Shown: positions 7,328-63,143 of the stretch, in pieces | Numbering within the stretch: position 1 is the first letter of the stretch | Layout: each line of letters starts with the position of its first letter | NCBI GenBank assembly: GCA_025594325.1 | Contig: JANHCV010000001.1 | Coordinates: 1,550,001-1,614,000, forward strand | Direction: 5' to 3' | DNA from: Blastocladiella emersonii ATCC 22665 | Lineage: Eukaryota; Fungi; Blastocladiomycota | DNA: 64,000 nucleotides | The notes under the pieces: generated by a model | The model's input: the letters and a program-made list of their open reading frames with translations, nothing else | Databases searched by the model: none | Told to the model about the DNA's origin: nothing | Made by a program: the position numbers and the translations under genes

Positions 7328-10255
7328 CTACTGCCGGCCGGACCCGAACAGCCGCCAGAACAGCGGCTCGCGGTGCGGCGTGGTCCCCGCGGCGGCGTCG
7401 CGCCCTGGCCGCGGTATCCTTGGCGCCGCGTCGAGGGCGACCTCGGACGTGGTCGTCATGGCGGACCCGGCGGACCCGCTCGACCCGCGCCGCGCGCGCC
7501 GCACCATGGCCATCCCCATGCCCATGTCCGGGTCCATGTCAAAGTCGACGTCCACCTCGCCGTCCGAGTCGCTCCCGCCGCCGCCGCCAAGCCCGTGGTG
7601 GTGGTGGATCGCGACCGACTCGACCTCGTCGGGCATCCCGACATCCGCGAGCGTGCCCGAGAACACCTGTGCCGCGAACGGGTCGCTGTCGAGGAACTGC
7701 GACGAGAACGAGTCGGTGATGTAGTGCTGCACCGCCGCGCTGCTCCCACCCGCACCGCCGGCGCCGGCGTGGCTGCTGGGACTCGTCGCGAGCTCGGCCG
7801 CGCGCGAACGGCGGTACGCGAGCACGTCGGCGGCCGCGTCGTCTGTCTCGCTGCCGCTCGCCGGGTCGTCGGGGTACCACGCCGACTGGTGCGGTCGACG
7901 CCACCGCGCGCGCCCACGCGGACGGTCGCCCGCGGTCGCAGCGGCTGATATTGCCGCGGCGAGCGCGCGTTCCTGGACCGCGTCCTCGTCGGGCGTCAGG
8001 CCGCCCGCGGCGCTGGGCGATGACGCGGCGACCGTGGTCCACGACGACGGGCGTGCTGACGAGGATGAGCCGGAGCCCGACCCAGTGCGGAACACGGAGG
8101 ACAAAAACGACGTGCGGGCCGGGACTGCTGCTGCTGTTGCCGACGCGGTTCGTGCCACCGCAACCGGATCCCCGTCGTGCCGGTCCGGGTCGCTCGGGTC
8201 CATGGGCGTCGGCGACGCCGTCTGCTGGAACCGCGCGTTCTCGGCGTACCCGGACGACAGCGACAGGAGCCGCTGCGGGACCGGCGGGACGGGCGGGACG
8301 ACCGCGGCCGAGGTGCGCCGCGACGCCGCCCCCGAGTCGCTGACCATGAGATCGACCTCGTCGTCCCACGCGCCGCGCGACCCGAGCCCGTAGTACAGCC
8401 CGTCGCCGACACTGCGGCTGCGCCGGTGTCCGTCAAACGAGTCGGACGTCGCCGACCACCGCCGGCCCGTGAACCACGCCGCAATCCGGAGCGCTGATTC
8501 CAGACCCGTCGTCGTACCCGGACTGCTCGACGATGCCGGGCTGCGCGAGTACGAGTGCGGTGGTGGCGTGGGGCGGAGCGGCGCCGCGGGATCGTCAGTC
8601 GCGCGGTACAGCCCGTTCGCCGCGCTGCGGGCGGCCATGGCGGTCACGGACGTGGTGGGCGACGTGCCAGACGCGAGGAGCAGCTGCCGCTGGCCGAGCG
8701 GGCCAGAGTACCGCGGGAAGCTGGACGCCGCGGCGCCCGCGCTGCCGCGACTGGTGGAGCGTAGCGGTGCGATGGGGACTGGGACAGCAGCCGACGTCGC
8801 GGCCGAAGTCGTGGCGCCAACGGTAGCGCCCTGGCGCCACGCCGCGTCGCGTGCCGTGACCTGGCGGTACGAGTCGACGGGGCTCGACTCCATGATGCGC
8901 GTGAGGATGGTCGAAATGTACAGCTGCAGCGCCTTGAGCTCGGACGTGAGCGCCGCGATCTCGGCATCCTTGTCGCGGTCGGCGCGGTCCGCGGCGGCGT
9001 CAAAGTCGCCGTCCACGTCCGACTCGGCGTTCTCGTCGCCGGCTTCTGCAGCGGGAGTGCTGGTAGCCTGCGCGACCTCGGCATTGAGCTCCTCGATCGC
9101 GGACGCCGTCTCCTCGGCGATCGCGTCCGCCTCGGCCGGCGCCACCGAGCCCTCGGCGCGCTCGAGCTCCGACGACAGCGGGCCGATCGTGCGGCGGCCG
9201 TTGGACGTCTGGCGCCGCCACACGCCGCTGCGGCGGCGCGGGGACAGCGACGCGGCGGCGGGCGAGACGTTGCGTGACGCGGTGCGCGACCCGGGCCCGA
9301 AGGCGGTGGCGCTGAGCTGGCTCGAGACCCACTCGTCGACCTGCCACTCGCCGCGCAGCGTGCGCTCCTCGAGCAGCAGGCGGTAGCCCTCGGTCTGGTC
9401 GCGCAGCTCGGCGACCACGGCCTGCAGCTCCTGCACGTCGCGGCGCAGGTGGTCGTTCTCGAGCGACTTTTCGCGCGCGTGCTGCTCGGCGGCCTGCTGC
9501 GACGCCTGGTTGAGGCGGAGGGCGAGGTTGAGCTACATCGACGCAGGCAAAGCGTGAGCTCGGACGAGGGGAAGGAAGCGTAGGGTAAAAAGCGACACAC
9601 CTCCTCGATCTTGCGCTCGAGCTGGCGCTGGTTGGTGATGAGCCGCGCCATAGCCTCCTGCGTCGTCTGGCGCGCGGGGTCCGGTGTATCGGCGTGCGGC
9701 GGCATGGGCGGGCCGGCCGATTGCGATCTCCTGCGTGCCGCGGCGGCGGCGGCGTCGCGCGGGCCGACGCCCTGGCCGAGCACGCGGCCCTTGGCGGGGC
9801 TCATGGCGCGCATGCGCGAGAGGCGGTCCTGCAGCGACTCGATCTCGCGCTCGAGCGTCGACCGCTCCATGGCCCACAGCCGCTCGGCCTCGGCGTAGCG
9901 GACGGCGAGCGCGCGCGCGTGCGACTGTGCGGTGCGGCCCGATTGCTCCGAGTCCTGCAGCCGCTCCGACAGCTCGTCGAGGTGGCTCGCGAGTGTCCGT
10001 GCTGCGTCCGACTTGAGCGAGAGGGTCTAGATCATTGTTTGTGTGAGAGTCGGTCGTCTCGGGTACGAGTGAAGAGAGGCAGCGTACGCGCTTGAGAACC
10101 GCATTCTCGCGGTGGAGGTCGGCGACGTGCGCCGTCACGGCCGGCGAGAGGCCGGGCGATGGTCCCTGTGTGGGATGGCGGTGTGAGCACGGTTTCCGTC
10201 GATGACGGGCGCAAGTCGGACGCACTTCAATGGAGGACGCTGTCGCCATGGACAT
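7328..10255 (-). CDS. Coiled-coil protein with a FIP-RBD-like (Rab11-binding-like) motif and a long disordered tail. Four exons.
   Basis: Exons 10255-10226, 10165-10088, ~10026-9601 and ~9533-7328 are joined by canonical introns. Heptad-rich coiled coils. Motifs EGYRLLLEERTL and ELKALQLYISTILTRIMESSP. Confidence 0.7.
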
Positions 10256-10962
10256 GATGATGTTGCTTAGAAGCCGACGAGGTCAAAGTCCAGGCGACGA
10301 CGTAACGGTCGTGCCTTGCCCAGTAACGAGGGCGTAGACGAGAGAGAAGGCGACGGCGGCCCCTGTCCGCGACCTTGCGGGGGCGGCACAGCAGCAACAA
10401 CCGTGCCGGGACTGGCTTCTCACGGCCGGGCTGCGCGGGACGGACGGGACAAGCACGAGCGCGCGGCGCAGCAGGCGGGCGTGGGAGCGTGGAGACGGGT
10501 GCGCGCCAAATGAAGTCCAGCGCGCAGATCCGCCGGTCGGACTGCTCCGCAAATGAAGTGATCGAGCAAGGCGCGTGTTTGCTGCGGGCTCGCGGAGAGT
10601 GCAGCGTTCCCACGAGGCTAGCGAAGCGGAGGGAGATCGCGGGGACTCGGACGTCTCTCACGCCCGTGCGGCAGGTTGTTGATGCGTTGCAAGGTGTGCG
10701 TGCGAAGCTGCCTAATTAATCGCAGCGTAGTTGGTTCATCGAGCCAGGGAGCGGCGAGGAGAGCGAAGGGATCGGCGCGCGCTGTGACGCTGTGGAGACG
10801 CCACCCGCCACGCGCCGTGACATCAGCGCAGAGTGTCTCGCACGCTGTCTCGCACCTGGACGCGCGATGCGCGACGAGACTCGACGCGTCCGGTCGCGCC
10901 TTCGCTGCCCTATCCGCAAACAGCGTTGACGCAGACCTAAAAACACGTAACTAGACGCAAAG

Positions 10963-11968: not shown

Positions 11969-13132
11969 TGAACCTCTATTGAATAAATTCGAGTCCTTTT
12001 GATATCACTGCAGCCATCAGGCGTGTCTAGTTCCGAACTGAACGGTCGGTAGCCTTGGCCGTGCAGGAGTGCATTGGTGGGGTCTGGTCGATTCCGGGTA
12101 CCTTCGGAGTTGGGGCGCGAGACAGGACCCAGACGTGACGCGAGGGCAGACGCCAGCAAGGGAGCCGCTGTACATAAGCCCCTCCGGCGCGACGCGACAG
12201 GAGGGCGCGAGACAAGACGTGAGCAAGGGAACTGACGTGAGGGAGTGGACGCAGAAAGCGCCACAGCCGCGTGAGGTGGCTGAATGGCTGGGCGCCGCTC
12301 GCTGCCAGCCGCTTCGCTGCCCTCAACTTCCGGCGCCCAACGCCTATCCTGCTCACTCTCCTGTCATCACGTCAGAGTTAACTATTTGACAATGGTCAGT
12401 CATCCATGTATCTCTACACCGCCGCCCGGAACGCTGCGAACTGCTCGGTCCGCCGCACGACGACCAACCGCCGCGACACCTTGCCCGACCTACCGCCCGC
12501 ACGAATCGACGAGGAAACGGACCGCAACGACGGTTTCGATTCCAGCGACGTAGAGGATCGCTGCCGAGCGTTTTCTCGTCGTTCTTGCGACCGAATTGCC
12601 GCCCGAACGGTTGCCGACGTTCCGGTGGTCACGCATGTCCATCCGTCATGCGGTGTGCCGCTGGCCTGTCGCGACGCCAGCCTCGGCCGTCGTGGCATGG
12701 TCGGTTCCCGTGCCGCCGGCGCCACCTCACCCGAACGGATCGTGCTCGCGGGCGAGCGAAACTCGCCCGTCCGTCTGGCTGCACTGCGGACGGCTGTCGC
12801 ACGGCCTCCCGGAGCGGTCCCGCCGGCGAGCCATGCTGTCAGCTGTCCTCGTCGAAATTCGTGTGGGTGGTGGCGTTCGTTCAAGCTGGTGGCTGGTGTG
12901 CTCGTCGGTCACCGTGCTCTTGCAACTGCACCCACCCCCGCACAACCCTCCACACAGCTAGAGCGGTCCCACGCAAGCGAGCGTGTGAGCGTGTGCGCGG
13001 GCTGCAGCGCCGCGATCGCCGTCGTCGTCCGACGTGGCGGTCGTCCCGCGCGACCACCCCACCTCCTCTGGACCACCCCGCTAACGCTCTCGCTCCCCCT
13101 CTCCGCCGTCGTCGTCGTGGTCGTTCTAATAG

Positions 13133-13494
13133 GCCAAGCGGACTAAAAAGGTCGGAATCGTCGGTAAGTACGGTGTCCGCTACGGCGCGTCGCTCCGTAA
13201 GCAGATCAAGAAGATGGAGATCACGCAGCACGCCAAGTACACCTGCGCCTTCTGCGGCAAGGACTCGGTCAAGCGCACCGCTGTCGGCATCTGGACCTGC
13301 AAGGGCTGCAAGAAGACCGTCGCCGGTGGCGCCTGGACCGTTGGGTGCGTTTTCCTCTGTTTGACGCGCTAGTTGTGCTCGGATTCCGCTCGATGCAGGT
13401 CGCTAACTGCTTGTTTTGCGCACTCCACAGCACCACCACCGCTGCCACCGTCCGCTCGACCGTCCGTCGTCTTCGCGAGCTCCAGGAGTCCTAA
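13133..13494 (+). CDS. RPL43: 60S ribosomal protein eL43 (L37a). Coding exons 13133-13344 and 13431-13494; the ATG mini-exon was not located with certainty.
   Basis: Translation [91 protein letters not shown], with a C4 zinc finger. Branch GCTAAC at 13080, acceptor TAG at 13130-13132, intron 13345-13430. Confidence 0.95.
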
Positions 13495-13808
13495 GCGCGC
13501 CCTCTCCGCTACTCCTTCTCGACGTCGTGTTCATTCTCTGCCCCGCACCCTGATCATGCCCCGGGCAATACAAGCCTTGATATTCGAAATTGTTGTTCAC
13601 CTCTGTCTCGACTTTGAGCCGTCTACGTGGTCTACTAGCCTTTGGTTGATGACCGGGTTTGAGTGACCTCACCGCGCGGCAGCGATTCGCTCGCGTGTCG
13701 GTCAACGGTCGGCAACGTGGGTCGAGTCCGCGCGCGCGGAGGTTGCCGACGATACGATGGTGGGCCAGAGCGGCCACATTGGCCACCGCAGCAGTCTGTT
13801 TGGACCCT

Positions 13809-13925
13809 GGGTCGAGCCTGAAGCTCGGGTCAGGTGGCGCCATGTTCCGCGGGTCCGCGGCCGACATGTCTGCCATGCTCGGCCACACATGGAGGAGATG
13901 GAGATCTGTTCTGCGGGGGGTGTCT
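13809..13925 (+). pseudogene. Diverged, frameshifted fragment homologous to the 3' end of the WD40 gene at 34388-34501; mirror copy at 17085-17201
   Basis: GSSLKLGSGGAMFRGSAADMSAMLG+HMEEMEICSAGGV here, versus GSGLRLGSGGSKFRGSAADVSAILGQIEEMGIGSAGV* in the WD40 gene. The two share the DNA core CGCGGGTCCGCGGCCGAC. Confidence 0.8.
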
Positions 13926-14202
13926 CGCAGCGCTCGTGAAGAACAAAACGCGAGACGTGAGACATCACGTGCAAAACGCGTGGCGCCCCCGCGACGCGTT
14001 TTCCGTCGTCGCGTCGCGTCGCTCGTTTTGCTTGAACGGCCTAGCTGTTTCGCGTCAGGTCTTGAATCAAGAGCTAAAACCCTCCGTCGCGATTTGCCTC
14101 GTCTCTTCGCGTCCCTTCGCGTTGTGTCGCGTCGCGTTGGTCACTCCATCGCGGGAAGCCGGCGACTCTCGCTGTTCAACGGGCACACTCCTAGAATACG
14201 TT

Positions 14203-15135
14203 ATGTCCATACACGACGACATGTCGAGCCACCTCTCGCACTTCCCCGCCTTGGTCATCGAAGCGATCTTGGTCCGCGCCGTCAAACTCCACAGCAGCGG
14301 GCTACCAGACCTCCGCGCAATGCATCAATACACGCGCGTCATGTCACGCGAGGCTATTCCTCGCGTGCACAGCGCGCTCTTCAAGCGGGCCACGAGACCC
14401 GTGGACCAAAGCCGGGCGACTGAAAAGGGCATGGTCGGACTGCTTACGCAGTTGGCCGAGCTCGGATCCTCAATTTCGTGCTCACGTCGAGCGCTCAAGG
14501 ATGCCATGTTCCAACGTCACCTCGGCGCGCTCGAGTTTTGGCGCGACCACGGTGCCGCGGCGCAGCTCAAGGCTGCCATCGGCGGCGTGCGCGCCAAGGA
14601 CACGATCGGCTTCTCGGATGGCTTCTTTGAGCCACTGGTACGTTTCTCTTTGACGATCAGAGGGCACCCTACACATCAAACTGACGATGAACGCGCGTGT
14701 AGACGTCCCAGCTTCCTTGGGTGGTCTGACCTCAAAGCCAAGATTCATCGCCAGCTGATGGGCAGCTCGGGCGATTGCGAGCTCGATCTTTCGGGGCTCC
14801 AGCTGACCCGCCGCGCGATTTCCAAGCTCAACGCTCTTATGGCGGGACGCACCAACGACGATCAGCCCCGCACCGACGACGGCAAACCCGTGAAAGCGAT
14901 CGAGACAATCGTCCTTTCCCGCTGCCCACTCGACCTGGGGCGGCTTTTCGACGTGGACTTTCCCGGCTCGGTTCTTCGAGTTGAGGTTGTGAGCTTCTGG
15001 CTCAAGTGGCTTCCCTTGAACGATATGATGCGCCGCGTGCGCTGGCCCGAGCACCTCGGTGAGCTGACACTCAAGTTTGCGCGGCTGCGCGTGTCGCTGG
15101 TGCCTCGCCTGAAAGTCGTGCTGAGGCGACCCTGA
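14203..15135 (+). pseudogene. Degenerate ankyrin-like plus leucine-rich-repeat protein, likely decaying
   Basis: Probable ATG at 14203 (MSIHDDMSSHLSHFPALVIEAIL). Ankyrin-like ALKDAMFQRHLGALEFWRDHG and LRR-like ELDLSGLQL, IETIVLSRCPL, LGELTLKF. The intron-like segment 14638-14702 (65 nt) would break the frame if spliced, and LRR-like remnants past the stop are interrupted. Confidence 0.5.
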
Positions 15136-15874
15136 ATCCAGGTTCTGAGGAGCAGCCGCAACGCAAGCAAGTCGAAGCTCTCGCAAGTAGCAACGCATGA
15201 AGTATTGCCAGATCGGATTCAGAGGACGTGTACATCTTGAGCGACTCGAGATACGGCAGCCAGGAACGGCGCTGCTCTCGCACTGTCAGTAAAACCCGCC
15301 AACATGAAAGCATAAAATTGTCTCCTTGTTCAATGTACTCCATCACAACTATGTAAAATCTGCCTGAGTACCGAGCTGCCGACTGAGCTATCAATTCGTG
15401 TGGTGAGAGACGCGTGGCGCGACGCGTTGCGCCACACCATCAGTTGATCAGAACTGCGATCAGGAAAGCGGCCGTGACCGTTTTGTCTCGCACCATACGA
15501 ACAAGGCACCTACCGGTCCATTACGAAACATTGCATGGCTTTACCAGACAGCACAAAAGTTACAGGACTCAATTGTTCTGGTTCGCGTCGCGCCACGCGT
15601 CTCTCACCACACGAATTGATAGCTCAGTCGGCAGCTCGGTACTCAGGCAGATTTTACATAGTTGTGATGGAGTACATTGAACAAGGAGACAATTTTATGC
15701 TTTCATGTTGGCGGGTTTTACTGACAGTGCGAGAGCAGCGCCGTTCCTGGCTGCCGTATCTCGAGTCGCTCAAGATGTACACGTCCTCTGAATCCGATCT
15801 GGCAATACTTCATGCGTTGCTACTTGCGAGAGCTTCGACTTGCTTGCGTTGCGGCTGCTCCTCAGAACCTGGAT

Positions 15875-16807
15875 TCAGGGTCGCCTCAGCACGACTTTCA
15901 GGCGAGGCACCAGCGACACGCGCAGCCGCGCAAACTTGAGTGTCAGCTCACCGAGGTGCTCGGGCCAGCGCACGCGGCGCATCATATCGTTCAAGGGAAG
16001 CCACTTGAGCCAGAAGCTCACAACCTCAACTCGAAGAACCGAGCCGGGAAAGTCCACGTCGAAAAGCCGCCCCAGGTCGAGTGGGCAGCGGGAAAGGACG
16101 ATTGTCTCGATCGCTTTCACGGGTTTGCCGTCGTCGGTGCGGGGCTGATCGTCGTTGGTGCGTCCCGCCATAAGAGCGTTGAGCTTGGAAATCGCGCGGC
16201 GGGTCAGCTGGAGCCCCGAAAGATCGAGCTCGCAATCGCCCGAGCTGCCCATCAGCTGGCGATGAATCTTGGCTTTGAGGTCAGACCACCCAAGGAAGCT
16301 GGGACGTCTACACGCGCGTTCATCGTCAGTTTGATGTGTAGGGTGCCCTCTGATCGTCAAAGAGAAACGTACCAGTGGCTCAAAGAAGCCATCCGAGAAG
16401 CCGATCGTGTCCTTGGCGCGCACGCCGCCGATGGCAGCCTTGAGCTGCGCCGCGGCACCGTGGTCGCGCCAAAACTCGAGCGCGCCGAGGTGACGTTGGA
16501 ACATGGCATCCTTGAGCGCTCGACGTGAGCACGAAATTGAGGATCCGAGCTCGGCCAACTGCGTAAGCAGTCCGACCATGCCCTTTTCAGTCGCCCGGCT
16601 TTGGTCCACGGGTCTCGTGGCCCGCTTGAAGAGCGCGCTGTGCACGCGAGGAATAGCCTCGCGTGACATGACGCGCGTGTATTGATGCATTGCGCGGAGG
16701 TCTGGTAGCCCGCTGCTGTGGAGTTTGACGGCGCGGACCAAGATCGCTTCGATGACCAAGGCGGGGAAGTGCGAGAGGTGGCTCGACATGTCGTCGTGTA
16801 TGGACAT
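15875..16807 (-). pseudogene. Mirror copy of the ankyrin-like/LRR gene
   Basis: Reverse complement of 14203-15135, with an identical ORF translation. Confidence 0.5.
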
Positions 16808-17515
16808 AACGTATTCTAGGAGTGTGCCCGTTGAACAGCGAGAGTCGCCGGCTTCCCGCGATGGAGTGACCAACGCGACGCGACACAACGCGAAGGGACG
16901 CGAAGAGACGAGGCAAATCGCGACGGAGGGTTTTAGCTCTTGATTCAAGACCTGACGCGAAACAGCTAGGCCGTTCAAGCAAAACGAGCGACGCGACGCG
17001 ACGACGGAAAACGCGTCGCGGGGGCGCCACGCGTTTTGCACGTGATGTCTCACGTCTCGCGTTTTGTTCTTCACGAGCGCTGCGAGACACCCCCCGCAGA
17101 ACAGATCTCCATCTCCTCCATGTGTGGCCGAGCATGGCAGACATGTCGGCCGCGGACCCGCGGAACATGGCGCCACCTGACCCGAGCTTCAGGCTCGACC
17201 CAGGGTCCAAACAGACTGCTGCGGTGGCCAATGTGGCCGCTCTGGCCCACCATCGTATCGTCGGCAACCTCCGCGCGCGCGGACTCGACCCACGTTGCCG
17301 ACCGTTGACCGACACGCGAGCGAATCGCTGCCGCGCGGTGAGGTCACTCAAACCCGGTCATCAACCAAAGGCTAGTAGACCACGTAGACGGCTCAAAGTC
17401 GAGACAGAGGTGAACAACAATTTCGAATATCAAGGCTTGTATTGCCCGGGGCATGATCAGGGTGCGGGGCAGAGAATGAACACGACGTCGAGAAGGAGTA
17501 GCGGAGAGGGCGCGC

Positions 17516-17877
17516 TTAGGACTCCTGGAGCTCGCGAAGACGACGGACGGTCGAGCGGACGGTGGCAGCGGTGGTGGTGCTGTGGAGTGCGCAAAACAAG
17601 CAGTTAGCGACCTGCATCGAGCGGAATCCGAGCACAACTAGCGCGTCAAACAGAGGAAAACGCACCCAACGGTCCAGGCGCCACCGGCGACGGTCTTCTT
17701 GCAGCCCTTGCAGGTCCAGATGCCGACAGCGGTGCGCTTGACCGAGTCCTTGCCGCAGAAGGCGCAGGTGTACTTGGCGTGCTGCGTGATCTCCATCTTC
17801 TTGATCTGCTTACGGAGCGACGCGCCGTAGCGGACACCGTACTTACCGACGATTCCGACCTTTTTAGTCCGCTTGGC
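17516..17877 (-). pseudogene. RPL43: Mirror copy of RPL43 in the right arm, probably lacking its start exon
   Basis: Exact reverse complement of 13133-13494. There is no ATG|GT mini-exon within the duplicated upstream part of the arm. Confidence 0.7.
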
Positions 17878-18302
17878 CTATTAGAACGACCACGACGACG
17901 ACGGCGGAGAGGGGGAGCGAGAGCGTTAGCGGGGTGGTCCAGAGGAGGTGGGGTGGTCGCGCGGGACGACCGCCACGTCGGACGACGACGGCGATCGCGG
18001 CGCTGCAGCCCGCGCACACGCTCACACGCTCGCTTGCGTGGGACCGCTCTAGCTGTGTGGAGGGTTGTGCGGGGGTGGGTGCAGTTGCAAGAGCACGGTG
18101 ACCGACGAGCACACCAGCCACCAGCTTGAACGAACGCCACCACCCACACGAATTTCGACGAGGACAGCTGACAGCATGGCTCGCCGGCGGGACCGCTCCG
18201 GGAGGCCGTGCGACAGCCGTCCGCAGTGCAGCCAGACGGACGGGCGAGTTTCGCTCGCCCGCGAGCACGATCCGTTCGGGTGAGGTGCTTCAAGTATAAT
18301 CC

Positions 18303-18456
18303 CTTAATTGAAAACCTGATACGAAACGACTAGATCGTTCAAACAAAATGAGTGATGCGATGCGATGCGACTCGAAGAGACGACGGAAAACGCGTCGTGG
18401 AGGCGCCACGCGTTTCTCACGTGATGTCTCACGTCTCGCGTTTTGTCCTTCACGAG
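18303..18456 (-). repeat. Diverged third copy of the ~140-bp element at 13933-14071 (mirror at 16939-17077)
   Basis: Translated view LVKDKTRDVRHHVRNAWRLHDAFSVV versus LVKNKTRDVRHHVQNAWRPRDAFSVV. The DNA AAAACGCGAGACGTGAGACATCACGTG is shared. The element ends about 15 bp from the right-arm junction. Confidence 0.85.
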
Positions 18457-18686
18457 TGTTGTGACGTGTATCGGGTCCAAACGCTCAAAAGCACAGCTGT
18501 AAGGGCCGTACGCGCATGCGCAGTTGACGAAACGACTAAGGTAGGCTAGTCTATCCGTTTTGAACACCCTTTTAAACTTCAACTCGCGCGTAAAAAAGTC
18601 GGAACCGTGGGTGGCAATCGCTGGACAACGAAGAATCACACCAAAAATTGTTCATTCATTTATCGTGGCAGCAAATGAACATGCAC

Positions 18687-34387: not shown

Positions 34388-37300
34388 CTAGACGCCCGCA
34401 GAGCCGATCCCCATCTCCTCAATCTGGCCGAGGATCGCGGAGACGTCGGCCGCGGACCCGCGAAACTTGCTGCCGCCAGACCCGAGCCTGAGGCCCGAAC
34501 CGACAGTGGCCATCCCACCGCCGCCACCGCCGCCGCTTCCGCCACGAATCGTGGACGGACGGCGCGAACCGAAGCGGCTCTCGCCGCCCGAGCCGCTCCC
34601 GTTCTCGTCGCTGTTGCCGGACGAGTCGAGCGAGGCCGTCGTCGACTTGCGCCGGCCGCCGGCGCTTCCGTTGCCGTGGTGACCGCGGCCCGTGCTCGCA
34701 GTCGACGCCCCAGCCGCTGCCGTCGTGGCCGCGCCCTCCTCGGCGCCCGCGCCGCCACCGCCGCCGTGCCGCGACCGCTTGCCGCGGTGGTACGCGTTCC
34801 AGATGCGGATCGTGCAGTCCCACGACGACGTGACGTACTGTCGGCGGCCGGCGATGTGGTGTACGGCGCGGATCTCGTCCGTGTGGCCGACGTTGCGCTG
34901 GACGAGGCGGTCGCCGTCAAAGACGCGGAGGACGCGGTCGCGGGCGCCAACGACCACGAGCCCGGCGTCGAGGTCCATGCACATGGCCGTGACGGGGCTC
35001 TCGTTGTTGACGACGATCAGGCACGCGAGCGTGTGCGGGTCCCAGAACCGGATCGACTTGTCCTCGCTCCCGCTCACCCACTGCGCGCGCGCGCCGCCCG
35101 CCCACGCCACCTTGGTCACCTCGGCCTCGTGACCCGCGAGCACCCCGACGAGCGGCATCCGCGTGTCGGTCGTCGCCGCCGTAGCCGTCGTCGAGGTGCC
35201 GCCCGGCGCGTGGAACTGGCGCACGTAAACGAACTTGTCGGCCGACGCGTACGCGAACTGCGGCGGCGCGGCAGCGGACGACCGCGGGCGCACCGCGAGA
35301 TCGAGAACCGGGCCGTCGGCCGCCAGCTCCTCGCGGCCCGCGGCCGACGTCGGGTCCCGGAACGAGTCGACGAGCGTGCCCGTGCGCAGGTCGTAGACGT
35401 AGATGCGGCGGTCCCACCCGCTCGTCAGCTACACGCTCGCTCACTTCTGTCAGCGGTCGTGGCCTGGACCTGAGCGCGTGAAAGAAGCGAAAGAGTACCA
35501 GAAAGTGCCCGCCGGCCTCCTCGCAGACAGCGAGACACGTCACAGCGTCGCGATGGTCGTCGAAGCGGTACCGCAGCGTGAGCCCGGTGATCCGGTTCGC
35601 GATGCTCTCGCCGGCGTGCCCGCTCTGCGCCTGGATCTCGGGCGGGAGCAGCGACGCGTCGCCGTGGTCGTCCTGCTGGTACCCCCACGTCAGCACGCGG
35701 CGCTCCTCAAAGGCGACGACGAGCAGGTCGAGCGCGTCGTGGAACAGCATGGTCGTGGCCGTCAGCTTGGCCGTGCTGGCCACGGCGGACGCGGAGCTGG
35801 ACCGGCCGAGCGACGGGGTTCCGGGCGCCGAGCGGTGCGATAGCGGGACACGGTGCGCCGCCGCCGGCGACGAGGACGTCGACTTGAGCGGGAACGAGAG
35901 CGCGCGCCTACCGGCCATGGACTGCCGCGCCGCGGGCGGGACCAGCTGTTGCTGCTGCTTGGCCGCCATCTTCTTGCCGGCGCTTCCCGGCGCTCCCGCC
36001 GCGGGCGCCATCTGGAGCAGCGCGGCGTGCATCGAGACGGGCTCGCGCGCGTACATGAAGGTGTTGAGCTGCATGCGCTCCCACTGGACGAGCGCGTTGA
36101 TGCCGGAGCTGAACATGAGGACGGGGTCGGACCGCGTGCACGTCAGCGCGTCCACGGCGTCGAGGCACTCGAGCGTGGTGACGGGCGCGGCCGGGTTGAA
36201 CCGCCACGTCACGAGCTGGCGGCGGCCCGTAATGGCGACCACCTCGTTCGTGTCGGGCAGAAAGTACAGGTGCTTGAAGACGGACGCGTTCTTGTCGTGG
36301 ACCTTGTCGTTGTCGGCCTTGACAAAGTCCGAGATCTACAGTTGGGACGGGTCAAGGTGAGCGGGTCGTCACAATCGGGGTAGGCGAGAGCGACCGTACG
36401 TTCACGCCGCTGCGCGGGTCGAGGAAGATGGGGAACAGCGAGTTGCACGAGATCCACAGCGTCTGGATGGGCGGGACGTAGGCGAGGCCGGTGATGGTGT
36501 CGAGGAACCCGTCGAAGCGCTGGAGGCAGTTGCCGTCGAGCGACCACAGCTTGACGCAGCGGTCAAACGACCCGGTGATGAGCCAGGCGTTCTCGGCGTC
36601 CTTGGCGTACGTCATGCAGGTGATGCCGGCGTCGTGTGCGTTGGCAATGGACGTGACGACCTGGACGCGCAGCCCGTGCGGCAGGCTCTCGTAGATGACG
36701 AGCCGCTGGTCGAACCCGCCGCTGTAGAAGCGCGCCTCGCACGAGTGCAGGCAGCTGACAATGTCGGTGTGCGTGCTCCCGCCGCTACCTCGCGAGCCGG
36801 CGGGCAGGTGCAGGTCCTTGAGGTCGAAGACGAGGTCCGGGATGTGCGAGGCGTTGCCCGCGGTGCCCGTCGACGCCTGGAGAATGTGGAAGTCCTCCTT
36901 GGCCTGGTACACGCGCACGCCGCCCTTTTGACCGCACATGAGCTGGTTGCGCCGCGAGTTCCATGCGAGCGAGTAGACGGGGGAGCCGGTCTACAGGGGG
37001 AGTGCGGGTCAGCGTTTGTGAGTCTCGCGGCGCCGGCTGAGCAGGGGTACCTGGATCTTTTGCAAGATTTTGCAGTTGTTGGACCACACGATGATGGTGC
37101 CGTCCTGCGACGACGAGACGAGGCATTTGATCTCCTTGCTTACTTTGCAGCGAGATCAGCGATTCGGCATGTTCAGCGTCAACAGGCCGGAGTCGCACGC
37201 ACCAGTAGACGAGGGCGGTGATCCATCCCGAGTGTCCCTCAAAGGTGGCGGTGAGGCGGCCCGTATCCGTGTCCCAGGCGCGGATGATCGAGTCCTCGCT

Positions 37301-37393: not shown

Positions 37394-37608
37394 TGCATCT
37401 TCTTTGTTGCCTGCCCGGGACGGCAGAGGAGGAGGTTAGGGTTTGGGTTGAGAGGCGAGGGTCGCCGTCGCGTCCAACCGCGAGACGCGTCGCGCCACGT
37501 GAAGGGAACGCGTGATCGGCGGGAGACACCTTTGACGATCTCTCGGCCTGATTCTACGTTTCGCCTTCGCTCCATGGCCGAGAGGACGGGAAACTGTACA
37601 CATGTCTA

Positions 37609-57404: not shown

Positions 57405-60400
57405 CTACACTGCAGGCACCACGCCCGCGACCACGCGCGCGACGAGCCGCCCGATCCCGGCCACGTCGCACCCAACGACCACGACGCCCGCGACCGCAAG
57501 GTACACTACCGCCGACGCTCCGGCGAGCGCCACGACGGCCGCGCGCGGGACGGGCGGGACGCGTTCCGCGGCGTGCCCCTCGCCGCCATGCCGCTTCTTG
57601 TCGCCGCACGTCGGACACCCCCACAGGAGCATGTGGTACGTATGCCAGTGATCCCCTTGCGCGCGCATCGCCGCCGAGACGGGGACGACGAACAGCGCCG
57701 TGACGAGGTGGACACACGTCGCCGCGACGCCGCGCGCCACGCCCTCGACGAGCACCTTGGCCGCGGTCCCGCGCACCGCGCCGTGCACCAGCGCGTCGCG
57801 CACCGAGTGCGTCGCGGTCCACGTGCCCGCCCACCACGCGTCCGCGTCGCCCGGGCTGCCCGTCTCGCGCGAGCCCAGGGAGATAAGTTGGGTCAGCGTG
57901 CGCGACATGGCCGCGTACGTCTGCGCCGCGACCAGGACCGCGACGAGCGGTGCGTCGGCCGCGGTGCCGGCTGCCGCAGCGAGCGCCGCGGCGGCCGTCC
58001 AGCTGAGGAACACGGCGACCGCGCACAGGACGTGGACGACAGGTGCGGCGATCCGGCTCGCTCGCGGACACCGCAGCAGCGTCCCGACGATGAGGACCCA
58101 CGGGATCGCCGCGACGTGCGCGGCCATTGCGACGGGCCACGGGGCGAGCGCGGCGCCGACGACCGCCAGCGTCGCGCGCATCGGGACCGTCGCCGACAGC
58201 CGCCACACGAGGACCGCAAGGAGCAGCCACGCCGCGAGCACGGACCGGACGCGGACGGTCCAGGGGACGGCGAACGCGGTACGGTGGCCGGTCGCGAGGG
58301 ACCGCGCGGGGACGTGCGCGGTCGCGTACCACGCGCCGGGCCCGGTGCCGAACAGCCACGCGACCGTGTCCCAGTAGTCGCGGGCGACGCGGCGCGGGTC
58401 GAACATGTGCGGGTTGAACGCCATGGGCGCCACGACGAGGCTGAAGGCGATGGCAACGACGAAGGCCATGGGCGCGGCCGCGTCGGCGGGGAGCCGCGCC
58501 GCGGCCGCCACGACGAGCGTGCACAGGAACAGGCCGAGGTCCGTGGCGACGCCGTGGTAGGCCGCCCACCACTCGCGCATCGGCGTGCGCGCCGTGGCGA
58601 CGCGCCGCCCCGTCGCCGCGTACCGCGCGAGTTTCCCGCGCAGCCCCTGCACCAGCGTGTGCGCGTACACCTGGGCGACCATGGTCTCGAACACGGGCGC
58701 GAGCGAGACCACCTGGTGCACGAGGCGGCGGACCGCGGGGACCACGCCGTGCTCGGTCACGAGCTGCAGGAGGAACGGCAGGTACGACACAAAGTAGACG
58801 GTGAAGGCGAGCAGCGACTGGCGCAGCCACGCGACGAGGAGCGCGTGGTCGCGGCCGGCGACGGCCGGGCACATGCGCGAGGCGGGCGGGTCGCGCGCGC
58901 ACGCGGCGTCGGTCGGAAAGTACCACGCGAGCAGGCACGCGGCGAGCGCGAACACGCGGATCGCGACCATGGACAGCACGTTGTTGAGGTGGAACCCCGG
59001 GTGCGCGTAGTAGAAGGTCAGCAGCCAGTCGACGGGCAGCTGCGTCCCGAGGTAGTAGTGCTCGCGCGAAATCAGCTGCTCGGCCATGCCGCCGCCAATC
59101 TTGCCCGTGAACTGCAGGATCGACGCGAACCCGAGGTCGCGGCCCTTGCCGCACTGCACGTACTCGTGGTGCGCGATCCGACCCCCGCGCATCGTCGCCG
59201 TCATCCCCGCGTAGATGTCCTCGTTCAGGTGCAGACCGCGCTGCGCCTTGGCGATCCCGCCGCGCGTCGACATGAACACGAAGTGGAGGTAGTCGGGGTG
59301 GCCGTAGTGCTACGCGTTTGGGGGACGTGGCCGCGGTCAGCCTTGTCGGATCATGGCCATGGTCGCGAGAGAAAGAAAGACCGTACCATGCGCGACTGCA
59401 GCCGCGCCATGACGCGCTGCGTGAGCGTCCCAAACGTGTACTCCTTGCCAGCGGCAATGTTGCCGAGCAGGCCGACCGACTCGGAGAAGATGAACTCGCG
59501 GGCGCCGACGATGGCGAGCGGCGACTCGGTGGCGGCCGCGCTCGCCGCCGAGTGCCGCGCAAACTCGGCCAGCGCCGACCGCAGCTTGAGCGCCTCCTCG
59601 AGGTAGTGGTCCTGGTTCGCGTCCATGAGCTGCACCACTTCGCCGCGCTGGTAGATGAGCGCCGTGTTCTGGTTGTCCGACTTGCCGTCGCCCAAGATCG
59701 GCGGGCCCGGCAGCTCGATGCGGTACAGCTCGCGCACGTCGTCGCCCTCGTCGCCGTCGACGCCGGCCTTCTCGCCGAGCCCCTCGCCCAGCGGCGCGAA
59801 CGGGTCGTGGTGGCCAAGGAGCACCGAGTAGTACCGCGGCGGCGCGCTGCCGACCTCGGTCCCGCTGCCACCCGCCTGCACGTCAATGTACGCGATCCGC
59901 AGCCCGCGCTTCGTGTACGCGCGCGTGAGCACCGCGAGATCCGCGCGTTCCTCGGGCGACATGCGTGCGTACTGCTGCATGGCGACGACGAGCCCGAACT
60001 TGGTATCGACGAGCCGCTTGACGTCCTCGTCGACGGGCGGCGCCGCGTCTGGCCCGAGGTCGCCGCCGGCGGCGTGGTGGTCCGGGACCGCGGCGCGGAA
60101 CGCGCGGTGCGCTGCCTCGGGGGAGGCCTCGAGCGACGCCAGCAGCTCGAGCGCCTCGCGGTACTGCATGATCCCGGCCACGGTCCGGTACAGCGTCTGC
60201 GTCCGCGCACTCGCCCACAGACGCGTGCGCAGGACCGCCGCCGGGTGCGCCGCCTGGTACCCGAGCGTCCGGTGCACGCGCCCGCGCACGAGCGAGCCCG
60301 CGGAACGGCTGAGCGCGGCGGCGGCGGCGGGCGGGAGCCGCGTCAGTGGGGTGCGGCACGAGGCCGATGACGAGCCCGCACCGCCGCCGACACCGGTACT

Positions 60401-63143
60401 GGCGCCTGCGAGACTCGCGACGCCGTCCTCGTCCGCGAACAGGCCGGCACCGGCACCCACACCGCCGTCAGCGTCAGGCTCGGTCTCGGCCGCGAGGTGC
60501 GCGGCGGCGAGAAACTGGTCCCAGTCGTCGGGGTACAGCGCCTGGAGGTACTGGAGCTGCATGATGCCGCCCTCGCGCACGAGGTCGCGCACCGACAGCA
60601 GCACCGTCTCGGCGTAGTGCGGGACGAGGACCGTGAAGGCGGGCGTGGCGCGGACCGTCATGGGCGCCGGGATCGTGCGCATCGACAGCGACCGCGCAAA
60701 GAACCGCAGTCGCCGGTCCGCCTCCGAGTCCGGGAGCACCGCGCTGCGGTCCTCGTGCGTGATGAAGTAGTTGGGCGGGACGAGGACTGCGGCGGCGGGC
60801 GCGTCGGCGGTGGTGGCACCGCCGGGACCGGGCGCCACGACGGACGAAGACGACGACGAGCTCGGGAACGCGTCGTCGGGCGCGACGGTGATGGCGACGG
60901 CGCCGGCGGCGTGGACGCGGCGCGTGGTGCGGTACAGCATGGCGAGGTACTGTTCGCGCGACAGGTGGTAGCCGCGGTACAGCGAGTCGACGACGCGGTT
61001 CCACACAGTGGCGACGGCGGCCATGTCGGGGACGTGCACGGCGCCCGTGTCGAGGACCTTGGCGTGGATGCGGTCGGGCAGCCGCGAGAAGATCCCCTGC
61101 CACGGCCGGAACAGCGACGCGCCGTCGACCACCGACAGCGAGAACCCGACGAGCGACGTGGCGATCGTGTACCACAGGTACGTATCGAGGTGGAAGAAGA
61201 TGTACGCGAGCCCGACGAGCACCGCGGCCACGAACGGGCCGTACGCCTGGCACGCGAGGACCGACGCCACGGCGCCGAGCGGAGCACCCGTCGCCTTGGT
61301 CGCGGCGCGCGCTGCTGCGTCGTCAATGTGGCACGCGTTCTGCAGCACGATGCGCACCGGCTCGCCGAGCGGCAGGATCAGAAAGTAGTAGCCCGTGAGC
61401 AGCTTGAGCGCGAGGATCCCGATCCACAGCGCGCGCGCGAGCCGCCGGTCGCTCCACGACCGCGCGGGGAACTGCGCCGTGAACGACGGGTTGGCGTGGT
61501 TGAGCTGCGCGCCCGACACGAAAAAGACGGGCCGCGTCGCGAGCGCCCAGCACGTGCGCCACGACAGGTACACCTGGGCGAGCCCGAGCGCGTACCGGAG
61601 CAGGCCCGACGCCCCGAGCACGGCGCCGAGCCCGCGCTGGAGCGGGGTCAGCACGGGCGGGGCAACGAGGATCCCGAACAGCAGCGGGATGATCAGGTTG
61701 ACGAGGCCGAGCGCCGACACGAGCGTGGCCTTGCGGATGGCGCGGCTGATGGCAGTCGCCGACCACGGCAGGAACTTGAGCTCGAGGAACGCGACGAGGA
61801 ACTGCAGGCCCGCGGCGAACAGGCCGCCGAGGCCGAAGAGCGCGAGGCGCAGCTCACCGCGGCCGAGTGACGGCGCGAACTTGGAGAACACGGGCGGCGG
61901 GCCGCCCTTGTCGCCGGGGAAGTAGGCGTCGAGGACGACGGGCGGGAGCAGCGTGATGAAGGCGCCGAGGTGCAGCGTCCACACGCGGGCAAAGTTGACG
62001 AGGACGTGCTGGAAGGTGCGCTTCTCGAGGAACGTCTTGCACGCGTACTTTTCCCAGGGCACCTGTTGCGGGCGCGGAAGCGGAAGCGTGTCAGCTTGGT
62101 CGCGGTGAAGTGAGAGCGGCAGAGACGTACGTCGGCGAGTTGCGAGTACCAAGTGTGCGGGGCGCACTCGAGGAGCGCAACGTCCTTGCGCGTCTTTAGG
62201 CGCTGGGTGATTGAGGTTCGTGTCAGTTCTGCACCGACAACGCGCGCGCGCGAGGTGAGACAGGAAGCGTACACGTAGCCAGTCGCCGTTCTGAAAGCAC
62301 TCGTTCCAGTCGTCGTAGCCGACAATGTCCTCGTGGTCGCGGTGGCGCGCGCGCGTGGCCGGAGCCGCGCTGGTCGTCGCCGCGGCGCGCGGCTGGTCGC
62401 GGGCCTTGGGGTCCTTGAAGGACGCGTTGCGCAGGACGAGGTAGGTCGGGCGCACGACGTCGGCGAGAAAGGACGGGCGGCCGCCGGCGGCGTCGGGCGA
62501 GGGCGACGCGTCGCCGTGGAGCAGGTCGAGGAGCGCGGCGTGGAAGGTGAAGGCGAGGAACTCGGGGCAGAAGCGCAGGTTCGCGGCCTCGCCCCAGATC
62601 GACAGCCACAGCAGCACCTGGGCGAGCAGGCGCGTCGACGACTGGGTCTCGGGCTGCAGGCTGGCGAGGTGCGCCTCGGCGCGGGTAGTAGGCGTTAACG
62701 CGGGCGCTCCGTCGTCACCGGGTGGCGCAGCAGCAGCGGGCGCGGTGGGTGCGGAAGAGGCCTGCGAGAAGAGGGCCGCAGCAACGGACGGCGAGCGGAC
62801 CCACTGGGCGTAGTTGGCGTGCGGGCCCGAGACGTACTCGCGGTGCACGTCGGCGAGCGCGGCGGCGTCTGAAACCGCGCGCGAGCTGCGCGAGAGCAGG
62901 ATGCTCGTGATGAGGGCGACCTGATGGCAAGGAAGGTGAGTGATCTGTCGGCCACCACGCGATGATGCATGAGCGGCGAGCACGCACCTGGTTGGCGACG
63001 CTGGCGGGCTGGAAGCCGAAGCGCTGGACGAGGTAGGCGGCGAGGTCGCGCAGCTCTTCTCGCCAGTCCATGGCGGGCGTGGCCGAGCCCGTGTGGCCGC
63101 CAAGGCCGCTGTCGACGTCGTTGCGGGACGGCGGGGCCGTCAT
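57405..63143 (-). CDS. FKS1: 1,3-beta-glucan synthase catalytic subunit (FKS, GT48). Five exons.
   Basis: WGEAANLRFCPEFL, RRLRFFARSL, LWASARTQTLYRTV, PILGDGKSDNQN, DANQDHYLEE, GAREFIFS, HYGHPD, LHLNEDIYAG, EYVQCGKGRDLGF. Introns 62987-62921, two in ~62272-62064, and ~59387-59310. Confidence 0.96.

Follow-up and report, generated by a model that had tools for sequence, protein, structure and literature searches.

A letter-perfect 5.6-kb palindrome at the RPL43 locus of Blastocladiella emersonii is genuine and most likely a passive structural scar

Fold-back palindromic duplications studied in yeast and mammalian work are reported to be seeded by inverted repeats of 5-9 bp with spacers of 3-12 bp (PMC7999016), and the product of ODIRA, an inverted-repeat amplification that depends on an origin, is an inverted triplication, arranged forward-reverse-forward, that contains a replication origin (PMC4689423). 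On a larger scale, the palindromes P1-P8 of the human Y chromosome display gene-bearing, near-identical arms, a unique spacer and sharp borders (PMC7999016). For Blastocladiella, nuclear palindromes are mentioned neither in the genome paper (PMC9730499) nor in the literature searched. Here, a perfect palindrome is described at positions 12723-18287 of a 64,000-nucleotide (nt) window of the early-diverging fungus Blastocladiella emersonii ATCC 22665 (assembly GCA_025594325.1, contig JANHCV010000001.1, positions 1,550,001 to 1,614,000 of the forward strand; all coordinates below are those of the window). The palindrome begins within the ribosomal protein gene RPL43, is present in the chromosome of the culture, and may well have been formed when one stretch of DNA was copied backwards during a single repair or replication event.

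The left arm (12723-15426, plus strand) and the right arm (15584-18287, minus strand) are 2,704 nt each and 100% complementary, as determined by a repeat search and a direct reverse-complement string test. They enclose a unique spacer of 157 nt (15427-15583, ~50% GC) that has no other match in the window. A perfect inverted repeat of 2,704 nt is not possible by chance, and the repeat search, covering 10-21 kb and the whole window, found no other long inverted repeat. All borders of the 5.6-kb unit have been located and are sharp, and a sensitive blastn comparison of 2 kb of the left flank with the right flank revealed no decayed symmetry beyond the arms above noise. With a GC fraction of 0.51-0.66, the palindrome block is below the genes located at 8-10 kb and at 21-23 kb, for which the fraction is 0.69-0.75. 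No target-site duplication is present at the arm borders, where the left flank ends in GCCGGCGC and the right flank starts with CTTCAAGT. A Pfam search of the arm identified Ribosomal_L37ae as the sole family, with no transposase, and tRNA and Rfam scans of 11-20 kb gave no matches. These results agree with a preliminary description of the locus, which had reported two identical 2.7-kb arms with a 157-bp spacer, neither a target-site duplication nor a transposase, and a block more AT-rich than the flanking genes.

While a perfect palindrome in an assembly of high-fidelity (HiFi) reads looks suspicious, public read data show that this one is real. Logan k-mer contigs from three public DNA runs (X1, X2 and X3), all belonging to one sample and one study, were aligned to 12500-18490. 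In X1 and X2, the left-flank contig (12500-12752) and the right-flank contig (18258-18490) each extend 30 nt, that is k-1, into an arm. A 217-nt contig (15397-15613) consisting of the spacer and 30 nt of both arms is present in all three runs at approximately single-copy depth, and the arm contigs match both arms. Contig breaks at the arm borders are the pattern required of a de Bruijn graph at a true inverted repeat. The depths, which are one figure per contig and hence a rough measure of copy number, are 33.2 and 29.3 for the flanks, 42 for the spacer and 57.9-72.6 for the arms in X1 (arm/flank ~2.1), and 120.8 and 132.2, 116.6 and 223.5-294.9, respectively, in X2 (arm/flank ~1.9). In the shallow run X3, a single contig of 2,665 nt covers 17316-18490 and passes through the outer junction 18287/18288 with 972 nt within the arm; a loose end in this run is presumably a remnant of a 454-type adaptor. 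The unduplicated joint from 15583 to 18288 was not found in the contigs of the three runs. Of the loose ends of X2, two (15583 and 17905) come from single-copy contigs that match GC-rich motifs over ~20 nt, as judged from bin depths, and the third (17198) belongs to the WD40 gene at 34499, so that these ends were rejected as alternative junctions or as signs of an extra RPL43 copy.

The flank depth of X1 agrees with the ~34 k-mer depth calculated for the 65-nt Illumina library of the genome paper, which was made from a separate DNA preparation (PMC9730499). The published assembly was built from HiFi reads with a mean length of 10.5 kb (PMC9730499), and the bases reported there divided by the assembly size give a coverage of ~186x; as the mean read exceeds the 5.6-kb unit, reads span the palindrome. 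The palindrome is genuine and apparently fixed in the chromosome of the culture. The preliminary description had allowed for a chimera of the assembly and had proposed to look at the junctions and at depth. Contigs cross 18287/18288 and the spacer junctions, the arms lie at about twice the flank depth instead of half the genome average, and the junctions are carried by contigs of three runs and not by chimeric reads only.

Compared with snap-back or fold-back duplications, the palindrome likewise has an inverted duplication around a short non-palindromic centre (PMC7999016). Its inner fold point (15410-15435, without strand), which straddles the border between arm and spacer and holds paired ACGCGT boxes at 15410 and 15422, includes a 22-nt near-palindrome at 15414-15435 (GTGGCGC-N8-GCGCCAC); its 7-bp inverted repeat and 8-nt loop are within the reported seeding size range. 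Yet the symmetry centre is 80 nt from this hairpin, the 157-nt spacer is not a hairpin loop, and the hairpin is statistically ordinary, with 13% of 90-nt windows containing a stem of at least 7 bp. Hairpin seeding is accordingly not claimed as a demonstrated trigger, given that the stem is common, its offset is 80 nt, and the predicted folds are within the range of shuffled sequences. Unlike a snap-back duplication of a whole chromosome arm, the copy comprises only 2.7 kb and was rejoined to the original downstream DNA.

With ODIRA, the locus shares an interstitial inverted copy and the retention of the distal sequence. As to short interrupted inverted repeats at the junctions, the inner one has the 7-bp repeat with its 8-nt loop, offset from the symmetry centre, and at the outer-right one none was found within 45 nt on the flank side. 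There are two copies in the window with a depth of ~2x, not 3x. The inverted triplication that defines ODIRA is therefore lacking, and the label "ODIRA-like" in the preliminary description does not hold. The gene-bearing arms, unique spacer and sharp borders are also found in the Y palindromes (PMC7999016), whereas the present arms are shorter by orders of magnitude, contain no duplicated gene in intact form, and occur in an asexually propagated fungus. The likeness to the Y palindromes, whose identity is maintained by gene conversion between the arms, is one of form only. Finally, foldback transposons differ in that the present locus has no target-site duplication and no second unit in the window, and its arms are unique host sequence syntenic with a relative.

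The left arm carries exons 2 and 3 of RPL43 (eL43/L37ae; PF01780, E 3.6e-35) at 13133-13344 and 13431-13494 on the plus strand, the latter including the stop, with intron 2 between them. The spliced model of 92 amino acids (aa) is 91% identical to RPL43 of Blastocladiella britannica, which a protein search returned as the closest relative of the product, followed by Allomyces. In the annotation of B. britannica RPL43, exon 1 is ATG alone with the donor GTCAGT, followed by a 216-nt intron. The corresponding acceptor of exon 2 in B. emersonii is at 13132/13133, and a scan for ATG|GT upstream of it found only two sites, both in the left flank and outside the arm. The best candidate, at 12392-12394 (plus strand), consists of ATG only with the donor GTCAGT and matches the annotated exon 1 of B. 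britannica, while the second candidate is ATG|GTCGGT at 12697-12699 (plus strand). As both candidates are outside the arm, the arm begins inside intron 1 of RPL43, and the right RPL43 copy (exons 2-3 at 17877-17516, minus strand) is without a start exon. This copy has no promoter, start codon or splice donor, a scan found no ATG|GT upstream of it before the next gene, and its coding sequence is incomplete. For annotation, the consequence is that one of the two RPL43 copies is a fragment lacking its start exon. A cryptic ATGCGC|GTACGG at 18517-18506 on the minus strand could act as an in-phase start exon for the right copy, in which case the repeat copy E3 described below would be intronic. No B. 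emersonii RPL43 of 38-122 aa was returned by the protein search, although the database holds proteins of B. emersonii ATCC 22665, and the published annotation may thus lack or mis-model RPL43 at the palindrome. A 243-aa open reading frame (ORF) in the left flank likewise had no record in an exact-protein look-up.

The gene order in B. britannica indicates which arm came first. At the RPL43 locus of that species (L001), a 1080-aa gene on the minus strand is followed by a 248-aa gene and RPL43, both on the plus strand. The homologs in the window are found at 7.6-9.5 kb (minus strand) and 10.95-11.64 kb (plus strand), followed by the left-arm RPL43 (plus strand). As the order to the left of RPL43 is shared, it points to the left arm as ancestral and to the right arm as the derived copy. 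In B. britannica, RPL43 is single-copy and FKS1 is directly downstream (L001 5575-11376). An FKS1-like gene is found in the window at 57606-62866 (minus strand), and ~44 kb (13500-57600), starting with the gene debris of the palindrome, are non-syntenic. Since FKS1 adjoins RPL43 in B. britannica and is 44 kb away here, the palindrome is situated at a synteny break. The relationship to B. britannica is too remote for the palindrome to be dated from it.

Downstream of RPL43, the left arm is composed of fragments. A frameshifted WD40 fragment at 13809-13925 (plus strand) stems from the last ~35 codons, at the 3' end, of a WD40 gene located at 34388-35293 (minus strand) and is 80-81% identical in nucleotide sequence to 34395-34501. 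It is followed at 14203-15135 (plus strand) by the truncated 5' portion of a gene of an LRR-like family, which has 87-89% nucleotide identity to positions 9795-10751 of locus L002. The ORF at 14203-15135 encodes 310 aa, has no Pfam match and no record in the exact-protein look-up, and gave weak LRR/F-box leads at 0.84 in an Atlas feature search. Neither Pfam nor the feature search supports an ankyrin identity. The protein database contains a single relative of it, P0121 of B. emersonii, a paralog on the same contig, JANHCV010000001.1, whose 475-aa model matches LRR_6 weakly and ends in a C-terminal CHCH domain. P0121 is named "Mitochondrial copper homeostasis protein" (L002 10001-13857) and joins the LRR-like paralog to a CHCH-domain exon ~2.3 kb further on; it is probably a fused gene model. 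Compared with the arm copy, the paralog is also frameshifted by 1 nt in its 5' part.

DNA alignment of the arm copy with the paralog identified a conserved 65-nt intron at 14638-14702, identical to the paralog intron at 63 of the 65 positions. The arm copy has a 2-nt deletion directly after this intron, so that splicing leads to a stop within nine codons, and the long 310-aa ORF depends on reading through the intron. The arm copy also differs from the paralog by a 21-nt insertion, and the two cease to be homologous at 15111, so that the LRR-rich rest of the family gene is not reached. Based on the frameshift upon splicing and the loss of homology at 15111, the LRR-like "gene" in the arm is most likely a truncated pseudogene fragment. 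Over 14638-14730, the retained intron restores the frame (65 - 2 = 63 nt), which could be chance in a GC-rich, stop-poor genome or reflect an exonised intron. As to the arm content given in the preliminary description, RPL43, the WD40-tail fragment and a repeat are indeed present; RPL43 lacks its start exon, and the second gene, which had been called ankyrin-like/LRR, is the truncated LRR-like fragment.

The repeat is a module of ~160 nt. Its first copy, E1 (13925-14080, plus strand), is positioned upstream of the LRR-like fragment and has paired ACGCGT boxes at 13976 and 13994. The right arm contains, on the minus strand, the corresponding E2 (17085-16930) next to its copies of the LRR fragment (16807-15875) and the WD40 fragment. 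A third copy, E3 (18294-18464, minus strand), is located outside the arms, is older and truncated, and shows 77% identity to E1 over 171 nt and 89% over a 98-nt core. The E3 homology ends 6 nt from the outer junction of the right arm, and the orientation of E3 is such that its associated gene is expected to its left. The core of E has a weak match also upstream of the LRR-like paralog in L002, and E is thus read as the upstream module of this family and not as a mobile element. ACGCGT is a motif of the MluI cell-cycle-box type of yeasts, and E may be a regulatory module.

The pieces within the arm are 11-23% diverged from their relatives (77-89% identity), whereas one arm does not differ from the other. 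The mosaic is therefore older than the palindrome, which merely doubled it, and the duplication contributed no more than a further RPL43 copy, lacking the start exon, and a duplicate of the probable pseudogene fragment. The proposal that the locus captures gene shuffling in progress was consequently overstated, as the pieces were assembled long before the arms became identical.

The reading preferred here, with a rough probability of 0.55, is that the left arm was copied backwards in a single event of break repair or template switching and that the end was joined beside E3. Break repair or a switch of template during replication would have reverse-copied 2,704 bp, comprising the rest of RPL43, the WD40 scrap, the upstream module and the LRR-like fragment, with copying beginning 157 bp past the end of the copied stretch. 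The end of the copy would then have been joined, with little or no microhomology, 6 bp from the older module remnant E3. The palindrome itself is most likely a passive structural scar, because the RPL43 copy lacks promoter, start codon and donor, and the LRR fragment is truncated and frameshifted, leaving no intact extra gene. Taken alone, it would be an ordinary repair scar with no evident function.

The preliminary description had proposed a very recent fold-back or template-switch duplication. The inverted duplication is real, but its recency does not follow, as the identity of the arms may reflect either youth or continuing arm-to-arm gene conversion. In long inverted repeats that lie close together, conversion outpaces mutation by far, and since it also keeps arms identical, the absence of differences in 2.7 kb cannot date the event. 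The 157-bp spacer probably helps to stabilize the palindrome, by analogy with yeast, in which lengthening the spacer of an inverted repeat from 12 to 52 bp abolished the frequent stalling of replication and a pair of 6-kb repeats separated by 280 bp was stable in the wild type (PMC7999016). These spacer effects are consistent with the persistence of the present palindrome.

Several points weigh against the preferred reading, both in its mechanism and in the read evidence beneath it. The mechanism is deduced from the product alone. If the spacer originally adjoined the sequence from 18288 onward, the junctions show microhomology of 1 nt (15583/15584) and 0 nt (18287/18288), which points to no particular pathway, although on this assumed ancestral sequence it resembles end joining more closely than annealing. 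DNA folds of E1, E3, the fold point, the spacer and the outer-left border gave z values from +0.3 to -1.8, none beyond shuffled sequences, the fold point itself having a z of -1.04. As for the reads, the evidence comes from contigs and not from raw reads, with correspondingly coarse depth figures, and all three runs come from one study and are probably the source data of the assembly itself. Moreover, the flank and spacer contigs overlap the arms by 30 letters, one below a 31-letter bridging rule, and ample bridging is provided by the X3 contig only.

A stepwise origin, the main rival, is possible, if rather unlikely. Here, an older and diverged convergent pair of LRR-family genes, with E1 in front of one and E3 in front of the other, would already have formed an inverted repeat, so that the palindrome would be old and only later extended. 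A break between E3 and its gene would have been repaired by outward copying of the left arm, taking in E1, the WD40 scrap and RPL43 as far as 12723, after which the ends were joined and conversion kept the arms identical. E3 is oriented as for a gene to its left, the homology between E3 and E1 breaks off 6 nt short of the arm border, and E2 and E3 form direct repeats at a distance of 1,379 nt, which is precisely what a stepwise origin predicts. However, there is no trace of an older gene body linked to E3 and no decayed homology outside the arms, and E1 and E3 differ by 11-23% beside sequence that is 100% identical, which would need an abrupt conversion boundary.

It is very unlikely that the palindrome is a functional hairpin-RNA or antisense locus, in which read-through of the spacer or transcription driven from E3 would give double-stranded RNA against RPL43 or the LRR family. 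While the two copies converge on the spacer, the promoter-like E3 points into the right arm, and the cryptic minus-strand start at 18517-18506 could give an in-phase start exon, the public runs found with this stretch are DNA only, Rfam has no match, and silencing an essential ribosomal protein gene would be costly; the proposal is purely structural speculation.

An assembly artefact, that is, a fold-back chimeric long read or a mis-join producing a palindrome not present in the cells, is more improbable still. Perfect identity and a short spacer are typical of chimeric fold-back reads, and every read is from a single study. Against this, junction k-mers covering all four junctions occur in three separate runs, including shallow data of the 454-adaptor type and data with a depth like that of the 65-nt Illumina library, and the arms have ~2x the depth of flanks and spacer. 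In addition, the spacer is unique genomic sequence rather than an adaptor, and the two flanks are distinct and located within long contigs of 6.5 and 46 kb. A mobile element, be it a transposon of the foldback type or a cassette that a transposase had moved, can be dismissed despite the long terminal inverted repeats and the repeated ~160-nt module near one border, as there are no target-site duplication, transposase or arm subrepeats, the left arm runs on from a syntenic host gene, within whose intron it begins, and the module belongs to the region upstream of the genes of a host family and also precedes the L002 paralog.

Whether formed in a single event, as preferred here, or stepwise, the palindrome could be one instance of something wider. 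That B. emersonii has an active genome-wide process creating or maintaining letter-perfect gene-bearing palindromes is a doubtful proposition at present. If it held, the border within the intron, the border at the truncated module and the blunt junctions would be the features that best preserve the footprints of how a palindrome starts or grows outward from older inverted gene pairs. Likewise, if the formation or maintenance of palindromes were a general trait of this genome, the locus would offer a compact and fully delimited test case for palindrome formation, stability and conversion in an early-diverging fungus.

Some further observations concern the motifs shared by the E module and the inner border. 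The paired ACGCGT motif at the inner border resembles the E core (18 nt, 94%), and close ACGCGT pairs occur five times in the window, where ~1.2 are expected. The E module is itself quasi-palindromic at 13944-14030, being 69% self-complementary over 90 nt with a 9-bp stem formed by AAAACGCGT and ACGCGTTTT. The sole other close ACGCGT pair outside the E modules and the fold point is found at 37485-37513, where the sequence at 37480-37499 matches the fold-point motif at 15413-15432 with 90% identity.

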